This document shows positions 486-25,087 of a stretch of DNA of 64,000 bases, piece after piece. The notes beneath the pieces are model-generated. The model did no database searches and was not told where the DNA came from. It was given only the letters and a program-made list of their open reading frames with translations. The stretch covers positions 1 through 64,000 of the forward strand of contig CDROCS010002724.1 in NCBI GenBank assembly GCA_977020255.1, given 5' to 3'. Origin of the DNA: Obrimoposthia wandeli. Its lineage: Eukaryota. Both the position numbers and the translations under genes were made by a program. How positions within the stretch are numbered: the stretch's first letter is position 1; each line of letters starts with the position of its first letter.

Positions 486-520
486 AAAAAAACATCACTT
501 TAAGAAAGCGATGTTTTTTT
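486..520 (-). terminator. Intrinsic terminator
   Basis: Minus strand CAUCGCUUU-CUU-AAAGUGAUG-U7; one stem position pairs (G.U) only on the minus strand. Confidence 0.75.
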
Positions 521-578
521 AAAAATTTCATTATTGATTAATCCCCCAATTTATCAATATGATTCCCCTGTGTATTAT
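486..578 (-). ncRNA. Candidate small RNA with two G-rich motifs
   Basis: CATATTTG (-7-like) at 590..583; CAGGGGAAT at 570..562; ATTGGGGGATT at 550..540; intrinsic terminator 520..486; no credible ORF; 5' end estimated. Confidence 0.5.
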
Positions 579-756
579 ATTACAAATATGCGATATAAAT
601 TCACTCTACAAAACCACTAATGTATAAATGACACTAATTCGTATATAAATAGCATTATTTAATCTCTTCTAAAAATATTTTTTATACCCCAAAAAAAAAT
701 TGCTTTAAAAATATTATAAATTAAAAGACTCATCAAGTAATACCTATTTTTTAAGC

Positions 757-8702: not shown

Positions 8703-10127
8703 TTACAAGGTTAACTTTCTCGTTAAATCTTCAACGTATTTTTTAAATTGCTTATCAGTTTCTGTTAAATTATCAACAGTTTTACAGGCGTGTAATACCG
8801 TTGCGTGATCTCTTTTACCTATTTGGCTACCAATACTTGCTAATGAAGATTTGGTCATACGCTTGGCAAAAAACATCGCTAATTGACGTGCTTGAACAAT
8901 GTGTCTTTTACGTGTTTTAGATTGTAAAGTAGCAACATCCATATCAAAATACTTAGAAACTACTTTTTGAATATAATCGATAGAAACTTCTTTCTTTGTA
9001 TTCTTAACGAACTTATCAACAATTTCTTTTGCTAACTCAACCGTAAATTCTTTTCTATTAAAAGAAGCTTGTGCAATCATCGAAATAATAACACCTTCTA
9101 ATTCACGAACATTCGATTTTATATTCTTTGCTATATATTCAACTATATCTTCTGGCATCTCAACACCATCTCTATATAATTTATTTTGAAGTATAGAAAC
9201 TCGTGTCTCAAAATCTGGTGCTTGTAATTCTGCTGATAATCCCCATTTAAAACGAGATAATAAACGCTGCTCTATGTCTTGCATATCTACAGGCGCTTTA
9301 TCAGAAGTTAAAATTACTTGCTTTCCATTTTGATGTAAATGATTAAAAATATGAAAGAACACATCTTGTGTACCTGTTTTTCCTGATAAAAACTGAACAT
9401 CATCAATAATTAAAACATCAACCATTTGGTAGAAATGAATAAAATCATTTCTAGTATTCGATTTTACAGAATCGATAAATTGTTGTGTAAACTTTTCTGA
9501 AGAAATATATAAAACTGTTTTATCAGCATATTTATCTTTAATATCTACACCAATAGCGTGTGCTAAATGTGTTTTTCCTAAACCTACTCCTCCGTAAATT
9601 AATAACGGATTAAATGAAGTTCCTCCTGGTTTATTCGCAACAGCCATACCAGCAGATCGTGCTAATCTATTTGCGTCTCCTTCTACAAAATTATCAAAAT
9701 TATAATTCGGATTTAATTGAGATTCAATTTTAACCTTTTGTAATCCCGGAATAATAAAAGGATTTTTTAACTCTCTTTTAGATTCTAAAGGAACAGTTAC
9801 TTTTTGAGGTTTTAACGGGTTACGATTTGAACTCGGAATTTTAACTGTTTGCGGACTATTACTACTATACGTATTTTCCATACGTACATCATAAATTAAC
9901 TTAGCATCGCTTCCTAATTCTCGAACTAAAGCGACTCTTAATAATTTAATATAATGTTCTTCTAACCATTCGTAAAAAAATTTACTTGGCACCTGAACAG
10001 TAAGAGCTCCCCCGGCCAATTTAATTGGCTTAATTGGCTCAAACCAAGTTTTATACGCTTGGGGTTTAATGTTATCTTTTATAAAAGACAAACATTCATT
10101 CCAAACTGAATCGGCAGTTTTAGTCAT
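8703..10127 (-). CDS. dnaA: Chromosomal replication initiator DnaA
   Basis: Walker A GGVGLGKT, DDVQFL, NVRELEG, RDHATVLHA. Confidence 0.98.
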   Translation of the reverse strand: MTKTADSVWNECLSFIKDNIKPQAYKTWFEPIKPIKLAGGALTVQVPSKFFYEWLEEHYIKLLRVALVRELGSDAKLIYDVRMENTYSSNSPQTVKIPSSNRNPLKPQKVTVPLESKRELKNPFIIPGLQKVKIESQLNPNYNFDNFVEGDANRLARSAGMAVANKPGGTSFNPLLIYGGVGLGKTHLAHAIGVDIKDKYADKTVLYISSEKFTQQFIDSVKSNTRNDFIHFYQMVDVLIIDDVQFLSGKTGTQDVFFHIFNHLHQNGKQVILTSDKAPVDMQDIEQRLLSRFKWGLSAELQAPDFETRVSILQNKLYRDGVEMPEDIVEYIAKNIKSNVRELEGVIISMIAQASFNRKEFTVELAKEIVDKFVKNTKKEVSIDYIQKVVSKYFDMDVATLQSKTRKRHIVQARQLAMFFAKRMTKSSLASIGSQIGKRDHATVLHACKTVDNLTETDKQFKKYVEDLTRKLTL

Positions 10128-10207
10128 TTGAGTTAAAAACTATTTTTGTTGTTAATTTTATTCGATTTTTAGGGGGCCACAGGGTTACCTGTTTGAGCGA
10201 ACAAAAG

Positions 10208-21495: not shown

Positions 21496-24372
21496 GTGAA
21501 ACAAAGAAAACTTCATATTACACTACTTGCACTAATAGTATGGAGTTTATCTTTTTCACAACAGTATACAAATTACTCTATAAAAGATGGTTTACCTAGT
21601 AATCATGTATATCGAATTTCACAAGACAATGAAGGTTTTATTTGGTTAATTACTGATAAAGGAATTTCTAAATTCGATGGTGAAAATTTTAAAAATTTCA
21701 CTATCAAAGATGGCTTACCATCTAATGACATTTGGCACATAAGAATTACACCTGATAATAAAGTTTGGTTTTTCTCTAAATCAAGTAAACTTGGTTATAT
21801 TTTTAATGACAAAGTATACTCTTTTGGTTCTTTTAGAAAAAAAGTTTTGTATCCAAGAACAATATTACAGTCTAAAAATATCATTAATTTTAATGATGGT
21901 TCATTTTATTATTCTTTAAAAGACAGTATTTGGGGAGCCTCTTCTAATTATCTTTTGGAGGATAGTAATTTAACAAAACAAAAAGTAATACACCCAATAA
22001 TTAACTTTCATGCTTTAATTAAAGACAGTCTTTATTTTTTTAATAAAAACCATAAAAAATCTTTTTTTATTAAAAAAGGTATTTTTCAAACTATTTCAGA
22101 ACACGGACAAGCAAATGACAGCCTATATATTAGTACAGCCAAACAGTATTATATAATTGAAAATTTTAATTCAGAAAAAGTTTATTTAATTTCTTATGCT
22201 TCACAAAATTTACCCGAAAATTTAAAACATTTTAGGTATCATAATGTGAATAATCATGTTCAGCTAACAGGGATGGATTTTGTAAGTTATTTAGGCAAAA
22301 ATGGAACATTAAAAAACACAATTCACATTCCCGAAAAATTAAATACTCATTTTTCTTTTATAGATAATACAGGTAATATTTGGTCTGCTACGTTTAATAA
22401 AGGTGTTTTTTTACTTCCAAAAGAGAAGAAATTAACTAAAATATTAGCTAAAAATAAAAAAATACAGCAATTAAAATTGATAAACAATAATATATATGCA
22501 GGTATTTACAAAGAAGGTTTTTTTAAAATAAATAACTCTTTAAAACCTATTATAAAAAACAATAGTTTTCAACATTCTATTTCATTTTTTAAAGACATAA
22601 ATACTTTTATTTTTTCTTCTGAAGATTTTTTATACGCTTATAAAAACAAAAAAACATCAATAATTAAAACCTCTAAAAAAAACTCTTTTAAAAATGATTT
22701 CGCAAAAAAAATCATAAATCATAAAGATTTTTTATATGTTAATAACGCTTTTGGCATTTTTAAAATAAACCCTATTAACTTTAGTATAATTAAAAAATAT
22801 CCGTTGTATGGAGTTAACTCTTTCTCAAGTACAAATACCAATCTGTTTTTTGCAAATCAATCTGGTTTATTTATCTTAAAAAACGATAGTATATTAAAAC
22901 TACAATCTAATAAATTATTTAATCAACCTGTATTAACCCAAGCTAATTATACACAAAAAAAAGTAATTATAGGTACTGAAGGTAATGGAGCTTATATAAC
23001 TAATGGAAAAACAGTTTCATTTATTAAAAAGACAAATAATTTAAGTATTCAAGATATTTTTGTTGACCTTAACAACAATATTTGGTTAGCTACAGCTAAA
23101 GGAGTTCATAAAGCAAGTAAACAAAATAATAATTATGTAATTACACAATCTTTTTATGAATCTGACGGGTTAATTTCTAATAACATAAATAGTGTTGTTG
23201 TAAAAAACGATTCTTTATACACGGGTACGGATATTGGCCTTTCTATAATTTATTTACAGAAAGAACCTGTAAATCAATTACAAAAAATCTATGTAAAATC
23301 AATAATTATAAACGAAACCTCTTATACAGGAGATACGATAATTGCTTCTTATAAAAAAAACGGTATTTTTTCTACCTCTTTTGGTACAATTAACTTTAGC
23401 AATCAACAAAACTTAAGCTATCAATATAAATTAGAGCCTCTTCAAAGTAATTGGATAACAACAACGACACCTTATATTAATTTTACAGATCTAAAACCAA
23501 ATACCTATTCTTTACAATTAAAAGTAAGTAACCATCATAAAGAAGAAAAAAGAAAAACTATTTATATTACAATTACTCCATTATGGTATCAGACTTTATG
23601 GTTTAAAATTGGTTTTGTTTTATTAGTAATTGGTTTTTTTTATTTATTTAATAAATGGGCAACAAAAAAAATTAAAGCAAACACACGTAAAAGTATTTTA
23701 AAAAAACAAAAAGATATTGAATATGAACTTTACGCATTACGTTCGCAAATGAACCCTCATTTTGTTTTCAATTCATTAAATGCAATTCAGTATTACATGA
23801 CTAAAAACGAGGTTGAATTATCCGAGAAATACTTAGTTAAATTTTCTCGTTTGATACGCATGTTTTTTGATTTTTCTAGACAAAAAAACATAACTTTAGA
23901 GCAAGAATTATTGCTTTTAAAGAGTTATTTAGAAATAGAAAAAATGAGATTTGGAGATGATTTTAAATTTAGTTTTAATATTGATAAAACACTTAACTTA
24001 GAAACAAAAATACCTACAATGTTATTACAACCCATTGTAGAAAATGCAGTAAACCATGGCCTGTTTCACAAAAAAGGAAAAGGACTTATTGATATTTCTT
24101 TAAAAAAATCAACCTTTAAAAATGAATTTATTATTGCTATAAGAGATAATGGAGTAGGTTTTTTAAAATCAAAAGAGATACAGAAAAAATCAATAAAAAA
24201 ACATACTTCAAAATCTACCCTAATAATTGCTGATAAAATAAAACTAATCAATCAATCTTTGCAATGGCATATTTCTCAAGAAATTATTGATTTATCTGGA
24301 AAAAACAGTTCTGGTACTTTAGTATTGTTAACCTTTAAAAAAATTAAACATGATAAAAGCTATATTAGTTGA
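21496..24372 (+). CDS. LytS-type sensor histidine kinase with periplasmic beta-propeller and Y_Y_Y domain
   Basis: YSIKDGLPSNHV propeller repeats, TM, LRSQMNPHFVFNSLN, QPIVENAVNHG, DNGVG; GTG start. Confidence 0.92.
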   Translation: MKQRKLHITLLALIVWSLSFSQQYTNYSIKDGLPSNHVYRISQDNEGFIWLITDKGISKFDGENFKNFTIKDGLPSNDIWHIRITPDNKVWFFSKSSKLGYIFNDKVYSFGSFRKKVLYPRTILQSKNIINFNDGSFYYSLKDSIWGASSNYLLEDSNLTKQKVIHPIINFHALIKDSLYFFNKNHKKSFFIKKGIFQTISEHGQANDSLYISTAKQYYIIENFNSEKVYLISYASQNLPENLKHFRYHNVNNHVQLTGMDFVSYLGKNGTLKNTIHIPEKLNTHFSFIDNTGNIWSATFNKGVFLLPKEKKLTKILAKNKKIQQLKLINNNIYAGIYKEGFFKINNSLKPIIKNNSFQHSISFFKDINTFIFSSEDFLYAYKNKKTSIIKTSKKNSFKNDFAKKIINHKDFLYVNNAFGIFKINPINFSIIKKYPLYGVNSFSSTNTNLFFANQSGLFILKNDSILKLQSNKLFNQPVLTQANYTQKKVIIGTEGNGAYITNGKTVSFIKKTNNLSIQDIFVDLNNNIWLATAKGVHKASKQNNNYVITQSFYESDGLISNNINSVVVKNDSLYTGTDIGLSIIYLQKEPVNQLQKIYVKSIIINETSYTGDTIIASYKKNGIFSTSFGTINFSNQQNLSYQYKLEPLQSNWITTTTPYINFTDLKPNTYSLQLKVSNHHKEEKRKTIYITITPLWYQTLWFKIGFVLLVIGFFYLFNKWATKKIKANTRKSILKKQKDIEYELYALRSQMNPHFVFNSLNAIQYYMTKNEVELSEKYLVKFSRLIRMFFDFSRQKNITLEQELLLLKSYLEIEKMRFGDDFKFSFNIDKTLNLETKIPTMLLQPIVENAVNHGLFHKKGKGLIDISLKKSTFKNEFIIAIRDNGVGFLKSKEIQKKSIKKHTSKSTLIIADKIKLINQSLQWHISQEIIDLSGKNSSGTLVLLTFKKIKHDKSYIS

Positions 24373-25087
24373 TGATGAAGAAAAAGCTTTAGAAGGATTA
24401 TTATTGAAGGTTAAACAATTTTTTCCTGAAATTGAAATTTTAAAAACGTTTCAAAATCCACAAGAAGCCGTAAATTTCATAAATACAAACACGCCTGATA
24501 TTCTTTTTTTAGATGTAGAAATGCCTGTTATTAATGGTTTTGACGTGTTATCTTTAATTAAAAACCCTAATTTCGAAATTATTTTTGTTACCGCATATAA
24601 TAATTATGCCGTAGAAGCTTTTCAACATTGCGCGATTGGTTATATTTTAAAACCGATAGATAATGATGAACTTAAAACGACTATTGAAAATGCTATTAAG
24701 GGCGTTAATCAAAAAAAGACGCTGCATAAAAATGAAGCTTTATTAAACAGGTTAATCAACACAACATCAAATGCAAATAAGTTAATTATACCTACAAGTA
24801 AAGGATTACTTTTTGTTCCTTACAATGAAATTTTACATATTGAAGGATATGAAGGTTACACCAAAATACATACCATTAACACTTCTGAAATTATAAGTTC
24901 CTATAACATAGGGAAGTATGAAAAACTACTGAATGATAATTTTTATAAATGCCATAAATCTCATATTGTAAACCTAAAAAAAGTACGTCATTTTGAGAAT
25001 GAAGGATATATTATATTAGAAAATAAAAAAAGAGTGCCAGTTTCTAAAACCAAACGAAAAGAATTTATAGATTTGTTCTCTACATAA
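24350..25087 (+). CDS. LytTR-family response regulator
   Basis: VDDE, FLDVEMP, FVTAY, YILKP receiver; CHKSHIVN LytTR domain. Confidence 0.95.
   Translation: MIKAILVDDEEKALEGLLLKVKQFFPEIEILKTFQNPQEAVNFINTNTPDILFLDVEMPVINGFDVLSLIKNPNFEIIFVTAYNNYAVEAFQHCAIGYILKPIDNDELKTTIENAIKGVNQKKTLHKNEALLNRLINTTSNANKLIIPTSKGLLFVPYNEILHIEGYEGYTKIHTINTSEIISSYNIGKYEKLLNDNFYKCHKSHIVNLKKVRHFENEGYIILENKKRVPVSKTKRKEFIDLFST

Follow-up and report, generated by a model that had tools for sequence, protein, structure and literature searches.

A predicted small-RNA gene beside a lipocalin-like gene

The stretch of DNA analysed here (the window) comprises 64,000 nucleotides (nt), positions 1 to 64,000 of the forward strand of contig CDROCS010002724.1 (assembly GCA_977020255.1, deposited under Obrimoposthia wandeli). 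In the spacer between a lipocalin-like gene and a gene for a 187-amino-acid protein, positions 578-486 of the minus strand very probably constitute a real and undescribed small-RNA (sRNA) gene of Tenacibaculum, as judged from comparison with related sequences. Protein comparison identifies the source of the window as a Tenacibaculum genome. The GAPDH-like protein of the window is 95% identical to its T. ovolyticum counterpart, the lipocalin-like protein shares 95% identity with the T. haliotis one, and a two-protein tree places the window as sister to T. haliotis.

An earlier note on this DNA had drawn attention to several features, all of which were located on the minus strand where the note had put them. 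They are two ATTTATA repeats 21 base pairs (bp) apart (650-644 and 629-623), a -7-like element (CATATTTG at 590-583), two G-rich motifs (CAGGGGAAT at 570-562 and ATTGGGGGATT at 550-540), a second terminator downstream of that of the lipocalin-like gene (a hairpin and T-run at 520-486, found as an inverted repeat that folds), a C-rich leader immediately 5' of the lipocalin ATG (1205-1186) and the motif CCCCCTAA at 10176-10169, upstream of dnaA (ATG at 10127). The predicted unit consists of the following elements on the minus strand, where R1 denotes the covariance model described below.

642..651, minus: upstream box 1, a degenerate form of the box shared by the family, ACCATTTAYACA, with its centre near -68 relative to the predicted start
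621..630, minus: upstream box 2, CATTTATACA, centred near -47, (nearly) invariant in position and sequence, a putative binding site of a LytTR-type response regulator
609..612, minus: possible -33 element TTTG, 18 nt upstream of the -7 box, read from the sequence
583..590, minus: -7 box CATATTTG, consensus TAnnTTTG, of the Bacteroidota sigma-A promoter type
486..578, minus: predicted sRNA transcript of ~90 nt, with an R1 score of 100 bits, a fold z of -5.1 and conservation beginning at the predicted start
563..577, minus: single-stranded 5' segment UAAUACACAGGGGAA with the first G motif, unpaired in the folds of all copies
528..562, minus: hairpin 1, with the stem AUUGAU/AUCAAU, a lower stem and the apical loop UUGGGGGAUU, whose G-run lies at 547-543
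486..521, minus: intrinsic terminator, a ~16-bp hairpin followed by a T-run, supported by an inverted repeat and by folding

The RNA is predicted to start near 578, adjoining UAAUACAC, and to end in the T-run at 492-486. The start is placed there because the flavobacterial sigma-A -7 box TAnnTTTG is positioned at -12 to -5 (PMC9723704), and it falls one base ahead of the point at which sequence conservation sets in. In all Tenacibaculum copies but one, a -7-like box ([C/G/T]AT[A/C]TTTG) stands at a fixed distance of 5 nt from the conserved RNA block. The exception is T. maritimum, whose box is located ~13 nt upstream of the block; the T. soleae copy carries the perfect -7 box TATCTTTG. The candidate -33 element is kept only among copies at the lipocalin locus, and a weak -33 element would suit an activator-dependent promoter. 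When folded, the candidate region has 15 unpaired nt at its 5' end, a GGGG-loop hairpin and a ~16-bp terminator hairpin, with z = -5.1 relative to shuffled sequences.

The neighbouring genes and terminators are also on the minus strand.

2724-1282, minus: GAPDH-like gene
1262-1225, minus: terminator of the GAPDH-like gene
1185-811, minus: lipocalin-like gene encoding a secreted protein of 124 amino acids, with its ATG at 1185
789-757, minus: lipocalin terminator, found by a terminator scan
Spacer of 460 bp between the lipocalin-like gene and the 187-amino-acid gene: contains the sRNA unit
350, minus: start of the 187-amino-acid gene, ~135 nt downstream of the sRNA unit, which runs off the window

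Conservation of the RNA family and its regulator-linked copies

A covariance model, R1, was built from ten copies of the unit, and known copies score 81-107 bits. Sixteen family copies were found in total, with the window copy at 100 bits and the 15 others at 31-107 bits; their hosts are Tenacibaculum, Polaribacter and marine metagenomes. Across 0.94 Mb of flavobacterial loci, among them the remainder of the window, no other sequence exceeded ~32 bits. At its gathering thresholds, Rfam 15 has no match anywhere in the window, and a permissive Rfam search returned sub-threshold, terminator-driven matches only, at 483-559 (MCS4 at 27.9 versus 56 bits and STnc370 at 22.4 versus 54). No paper describing the family was found in the literature on Tenacibaculum or on LytTR-linked sRNAs of Bacteroidota.

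When the 19-nt loop core was used as the query, a metagenome scan yielded six true copies on five contigs (L090, L092, L093 with two, L100 and L102), and nine further matches were unrelated, chance or coding sequences. The true copies all share two upstream boxes, a -7 box, a near-invariant block of ~50 nt, a variable linker and a terminator. The block opens with UAAUACACAAGGGG and extends through hairpin 1, and the terminator stem has a different sequence in nearly every copy. Within the 5' segment, UAAUACACA is invariant across Tenacibaculum copies. The entire unit, promoter and terminator included, is duplicated in tandem on the Tenacibaculum-like metagenome contig L093 (1410-1501 and 1611-1700) and in Polaribacter sp. 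Z022 (L107, 3811-3725 and 3591-3507). In the metagenome copy at L092 1149-1237 (minus strand), the linker contains an additional, third G motif, AAUUGGGGAGC, immediately 5' of the terminator.

The RNA is under purifying selection with structural covariation. Among 14 aligned copies, 97.4% of alignment cells at the predicted base pairs are paired, compared with 32-63% when the partners are slid, and 13 of the 27 base pairs have changes on both sides. Compensatory changes are concentrated in the terminator (10 of 13 pairs, 97.8% of cells paired); hairpin 1 has 14 pairs, of which three changed on both sides, and 96.9% of its cells are paired. These values come from an alignment that was fitted to R1 and thus somewhat favours the structure, but single-sequence folds that were run independently yield the same structure. 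The AUUGAU/AUCAAU stem and UGGGGG in the loop form a core that is invariant across genera, with GGGGA in the T. ovolyticum loop. The loop G-run, which is retained in T. maritimum and Polaribacter, is the most conserved element of the family. The first G motif varies among copies (AGGGG, AAGGGG, AAGGG, AAGGGAA, AAGGA, AAGGU and AAGAG). Of the two G motifs listed in the earlier note, the 5' one is thus no fixed GGGG and reads AAGGGAA, AAGGA or AAGGU elsewhere.

At the syntenic lipocalin locus, the unit is present in T. haliotis, T. soleae, AHE15PA and HL-MS23 (four species, five assemblies) in addition to the window. It is absent from this site in T. ovolyticum, T. insulae, Bg11-29, SDUM215027 and T. 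geojense, where the spacer is only 108-135 bp long. Each of the four copy-bearing species was compared with the window segment by segment, giving the following identities.

RNA 5' half: 84-94%
Linker and terminator: 73-84%
Upstream boxes: 64-87%
Flanking spacers of T. soleae, AHE15PA and HL-MS23: 14-47%
Flanking spacers of T. haliotis: 73-75%

None of 73 other syntenic flavobacterial loci contains the unit, in a search of the loci and not of whole genomes. Tenacibaculum and Polaribacter are the only genera in which the family was seen, whereas the earlier note had raised the possibility of a wider sRNA/leader code in Flavobacteriaceae.

Metagenome contigs L093 and L100 reveal a different genomic setting. 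There, the RNA gene sits between rpmA and a gene for a 244-amino-acid protein with Response_reg and LytTR domains, convergent with the former and divergent from the latter. The LytTR regulator is 73-96% identical across its best 120 matches, which come from Tenacibaculum and Polaribacter, and the gene that follows it encodes a TPR and LytS-type His_kinase protein of 607-638 amino acids. An R1 copy lies upstream of the regulator operon in all five genomes checked and is directly divergent in four of them.

T. ovolyticum: 89 bits, divergent from the regulator
T. haliotis: 81 bits, divergent from the regulator
T. insulae: 78 bits, divergent from the regulator
T. maritimum: 52 bits, with the RNA gene separated from the regulator by a cytolysin-family gene
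Polaribacter sp. Z022: 39 and 31 bits, two tandem copies divergent from the regulator

The T. maritimum gene (L106, 2297-3793) is intact and belongs to the thiol-activated (cholesterol-dependent) cytolysin family (PF01289). It separates the sRNA gene and its box pair from the LytTR regulator, points away from the boxes in its transcription and may share the control region of the module.

T. haliotis has two copies, one linked to the regulator and the other at the lipocalin locus. Comparison across species shows that the window copy is a paralogue that occupies the lipocalin locus in only some species. The lipocalin-adjacent copy, on which the earlier note had centred, is therefore a secondary one: T. 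ovolyticum, T. insulae, Bg11-29, SDUM215027 and T. geojense lack it and yet keep the C-rich leader. An initial reading of the unit as lineage-specific and missing from T. ovolyticum was corrected, given that only the lipocalin-locus paralogue is missing there and the regulator-linked copy is present. The lipocalin-locus copy requires at least two gain or loss events on the tree. Because T. insulae, which has no such copy, nests with the copy-bearing T. haliotis and the window organism, the distribution points to an old paralogue with subsequent loss.

Every Tenacibaculum copy is preceded by two boxes with the consensus ACC[A/G]T[T/C]TA[C/T]ACA exactly 21 bp apart, and the regularly spaced repeats that had been noticed in the window proved to be these conserved boxes. 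In both Polaribacter copies, the boxes are displaced or irregularly spaced. The double box has a single match in the window, at 621-651 with two mismatches, where 0.06 would be expected. LytTR sites generally consist of two repeats of 9-11 nt with 11-13 nt between them (PMC4847170), and the box pair conforms to this layout.

Proposed mode of action and competing explanations

We favour the reading, at a probability of roughly 0.6, that the family is a LytTR-linked, trans-acting sRNA of ~90 nt with a G-rich loop and that the window copy is a paralogue of it. A phosphorylated LytTR regulator would bind the two boxes near -68 and -47 in their 21-bp register and activate the sRNA promoter, as AgrA does at agr P3 of Staphylococcus aureus. 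The sRNA would then act in trans through the exposed G-run of its apical loop by pairing with C-runs, possibly assisted in Tenacibaculum by the single-stranded 5' AAGGGG. The targeted C-runs would be rare elements of AT-rich leaders that lack Shine-Dalgarno sequences. Within the window, the best candidate target would be the 5' untranslated region (UTR) of the lipocalin-like gene, with dnaA as a weaker one.

1221-1214, minus: lipocalin -7 box TATATTTG, which puts the transcription start near 1209 (PMC9723704)
1186..1209, minus: predicted 24-nt lipocalin 5' UTR, consisting almost wholly of two C-runs (CCCCUAA CCCCCUAA), candidate target
10169..10176, minus: motif CCCCCUAA in the presumed dnaA 5' UTR, following a small conserved hairpin, weaker candidate target

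The lipocalin leader retains its two C-runs in 11 of 11 Tenacibaculum orthologues, including those of T. geojense and SDUM215027, whose proteins are 35-42% identical. The persistence of both C-runs in such distant orthologues indicates that the leader is under constraint. Species without the lipocalin-locus unit also retain the C-rich leader. This is not counterevidence, because T. ovolyticum and T. insulae, the two that were checked, keep a regulator-linked copy. The pairing proposed in the earlier note was counted correctly, at 10 of 11 positions including one G.U, with one A.C mismatch. In duplex formation with the loop, the lipocalin leader comes first among the 54 leaders of the window (-13.8 kcal/mol, against a mean of -6.5 and a standard deviation of 2.5; z ~ -2.9), and dnaA ranks second when leaders are set as -80 to +20. 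Eight sRNA-leader pairs from seven species give own-species duplexes of -9.7 to -17 kcal/mol. In the dnaA leader, CCCC(C) is kept in five species with variable flanks.

Several details of these leaders were recorded alongside. The T. soleae lipocalin 5' UTR differs among assemblies (L083, L084 and L085, 9960-10000), reading CCCCCTAA+CCCCTTAA, CCCCCTAA+C9TAA or three CCCCCTAA units, which looks like slipped-strand variation of an 8-nt repeat or a poly-C tract. The presumed dnaA leader (10176-10197, minus strand; also L081 and L083-L086) opens with a small hairpin, ACAGG..CCUGU, before CCCC(C). The hairpin shows compensatory changes in T. insulae (UAUAG..CUAUA), and a DnaA-box-like TTATTCACA overlaps the putative dnaA -7 box.

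A number of observations weigh against the favoured reading. The first place of the lipocalin leader was obtained post hoc and is not exceptional at genome scale, where several leaders would be expected to match equally well by chance. Duplexes at many coding sites in the window are stronger (-15 to -17 kcal/mol), species differ in whether the pairing register falls on the first or the second C-run, and the T. ovolyticum loop pairs poorly with its own leader (-9.7 kcal/mol). On the side of regulation, we infer LytTR binding and activation at the boxes from adjacency and site geometry alone, and box 1 of the window is degenerate, with a 1-nt insertion and no ACC. The cognate regulator and the primary copy do not lie within the window. 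The LytS/LytTR pair of the window itself (21496-25087) was considered and rejected as the cognate, since its regulator is only 38% identical to the sRNA-linked one. That pair consists of a 958-amino-acid Reg_prop/Y_Y_Y/His_kinase protein and a 245-amino-acid LytTR regulator (24350-25087), and no double box of the sRNA type was found near it. The only public sequencing run that contains the window DNA is not an RNA run.

The composition of the window adds little in favour. The earlier note had argued from the rarity of long G or C runs in such AT-rich DNA. Runs of at least five G or C are indeed depleted about three-fold across the whole window (5 versus 15.3 +/- 4 expected from dinucleotide shuffles), but the argument is a weak one, as three such runs lie outside long open reading frames (ORFs) where 0.9 would be expected (P ~0.09, not significant). 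CCCCTAA occurs three times against an expected ~4. Five window genes have C4 within 60 nt upstream and one has G4; among ~80 ORFs of other loci, there are three C4 matches from two distinct genes and no G4 match. Both sets are too small for an enrichment test. The only non-lipocalin leader with a C-run among these ~80 ORFs belongs to a Bg11-29 gene (L087, 13949) for a 620-amino-acid secreted glycosidase-like protein (EndoS-type TIM barrel, CBM_5_12 and Big_7), with a C6 run 16-21 nt upstream of the ATG. It is because of conservation, and not of G/C-run counts, that the feature stands above chance.

One part of the original proposal of a trans-acting sRNA that reads C-rich leaders is well supported: an independent minus-strand gene of ~90 nt with its own promoter and terminator, backed by a 16-copy family, covariation and the lack of a conserved ORF. 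The targeting of lipocalin and dnaA fares worse, considering the post hoc ranking, the moving register, the strong coding-site duplexes and the dnaA site, which lies ~45 nt upstream of the ATG and offers only seven contiguous pairs. Pairing between the G-run and C-runs appears to be the likeliest mode of action, although we would place it somewhat below even odds. The lipocalin-like gene is a possible but doubtful target on the duplex predictions, and dnaA is quite an improbable one. A broader 'C-leader regulon', in which the LytTR system would act through G-loop sRNA copies that read oligo-C in very short 5' UTRs, including that of lipocalin and possibly that of dnaA, is unlikely as it stands.

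The best-surviving alternative, which we consider rather unlikely, is that the RNA is real and binds a protein. In such a CsrB/RsmZ-type or other ribonucleoprotein-type RNA, the G-loop and the 5' AAGGGGAA, both of which contain GGA, would dock or sequester the partner, and the complementarity to C-rich leaders would be coincidental. That the best-conserved element is a G-run exposed in a hairpin loop would suit such an RNA, the multiple copies (in tandem on L093 and in Polaribacter, and at two loci in T. haliotis) would fit dosage-dependent sponges, and the pairing registers with the lipocalin leader are unconserved. However, the number of GGA motifs is only one or two per family RNA, compared with many in known sponges. 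No candidate partner protein was found, although no genome search for CsrA was made, and a sponge leaves the conserved C-runs of the lipocalin and dnaA leaders unexplained.

It is improbable that, within a functional family, the window copy has fallen silent or is degenerating as a duplicate carried in the lipocalin spacer, its promoter weakened and the copy itself without a function. The degenerate box 1, which is shared with T. haliotis, points in this direction, as do the absence of the copy from several species, its loss in T. insulae despite its presence in the nearest relatives, and the retention of the regulator-linked copy by species without it. The four species that have the copy at this locus tell against decay, given that the RNA 5' half (84-94%) and the boxes (64-87%) are far better preserved than the spacers (14-47%) and that terminator pairing is maintained by compensatory changes. 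This pattern indicates purifying selection on the window copy.

Very improbable is a cis-acting, riboswitch-like leader or attenuator of the 187-amino-acid gene, or a short protein-coding gene, even though a gene on the same strand begins ~135 nt downstream and the ATG at 531 opens an 18-codon frame. As a leader of the 187-amino-acid gene, the element was rejected: no gene follows the regulator-linked copies in the same orientation, species without the unit still have a conserved promoter for the 187-amino-acid gene alone, and Rfam gives no riboswitch or leader match. The sRNA is thus taken to stand alone, since its regulator-linked copies converge on rpmA and serve no downstream gene. The coding version was rejected as well. 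The earlier note had likewise seen no credible ORF, and the 18-amino-acid frame from ATG 531, the sole one, traverses the terminator. Its ATG becomes TTG or shifts in AHE15PA and HL-MS23, indels alter the frame, and the resulting peptides are unrelated, being dictated by the terminator of each copy.

A chance arrangement of promoter-like and terminator-like sequences in an AT-rich spacer, to which the commonness of promoter-like matches in the window (17 found versus 10 expected) and the non-significant G/C-run counts lend some colour, is effectively refuted by fifteen other conserved copies in differing genomic contexts with covariation. A transposable element of the miniature inverted-repeat type or an internal duplication was also rejected, as a repeat search gave low-complexity matches only, with no terminal inverted repeats, and R1 finds no second copy in the window.

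The favoured LytTR-linked sRNA would constitute a compact module in which a sensor kinase and a LytTR regulator are joined by one or two sRNA genes whose candidate seed is clear. Tenacibaculum is a marine and fish-associated genus that includes important fish pathogens, and in T. maritimum the module contains a gene of the cholesterol-dependent-cytolysin family. Very few of the regulatory RNAs of Bacteroidota are understood, and hardly any of those of marine Flavobacteriaceae, and to our knowledge none has been tied to a specific signalling system. If the pairing of the G-loop with C-leaders is true, it would show how an sRNA can target leaders without Shine-Dalgarno sequences and would provide a simple sequence rule for finding the regulon. 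If the C-leader regulon is true, it would tie an external signal to the translation of chosen mRNAs, perhaps to replication initiation, and the varying number of CCCCCUAA units in T. soleae lipocalin leaders could tune the response.

Comparison with known regulatory systems

Among Bacteroidota sRNAs, GibS of Bacteroides thetaiotaomicron and Rfp18 of Flavobacterium psychrophilum are likewise short and terminator-ended, are preceded by TAnnTTTG promoters and have seeds that are single-stranded or in loops (PMC9723704; PMC7366714). Conserved within its genus, Rfp18 exerts its effect via a stem-loop (PMC9723704; PMC7366714). GibS differs in having no similarity to the family, its Rfam model RF04182 reaching no more than 24 bits, and that on a terminator. 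For the sRNAs of F. psychrophilum, the supplements were searched for the loop motif only and yielded one unrelated promoter; no link to a LytTR system was found for RNAs of the GibS/Rfp18 type.

With regard to the boxes, the YpdB and BtsR (YehT) sites of Escherichia coli are similarly composed of two direct repeats of ~10 nt in a 21-bp register just upstream of the core promoter (PMC4847170). Two sequences within the YehT probe, ACCGCTTA and ACCACTCA, resemble the family box core ACC[A/G]T[T/C]TA, as compared by eye only (PMC4847170). The two systems differ from the present one in organism, in their targets, which are transporter genes, and in the sigma-factor type of the promoter.

The family shares its layout with the agr/RNAIII system of S. 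aureus. Both combine a LytTR two-component operon with a divergent regulatory RNA gene and direct repeats upstream of the RNA promoter, and both have a homopolymeric run in a hairpin loop as the likely interaction site. In RNAIII, C-rich loops act against G-rich ribosome-binding sites. VirR/VR-RNA and FasA/FasX are related LytTR-to-RNA modules in Firmicutes. AgrA binds repeat pairs between the divergent agr promoters P2 and P3, and P3 drives RNAIII (PMC4227749). In the present family, the primary copies are adjacent to and divergent from the regulator, whereas the window copy is detached and has no such neighbour. RNAIII is ~514 nt long, compared with ~90 nt here, where the RNA encodes no peptide; its loop is C-rich and not G-rich, and the phylum of Tenacibaculum does not use Shine-Dalgarno sites. 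Unlike in agr, TPR repeats are part of the sRNA-linked kinase, and some species have a duplicate of the RNA gene, either in tandem or at a second locus. No AgrB or AgrD families were found among the genes called around the regulator (TPR/His_kinase, a Y-family polymerase and others), and there is no Rfam RNAIII match. The window family therefore resembles agr and the other LytTR-to-RNA modules of Firmicutes in layout and is a member of none of them, with regulation by LytTR proposed from gene order and box geometry. Thus, the element would represent a new sRNA family of a known kind, in which the apparent link to a two-component system is the most informative new element.

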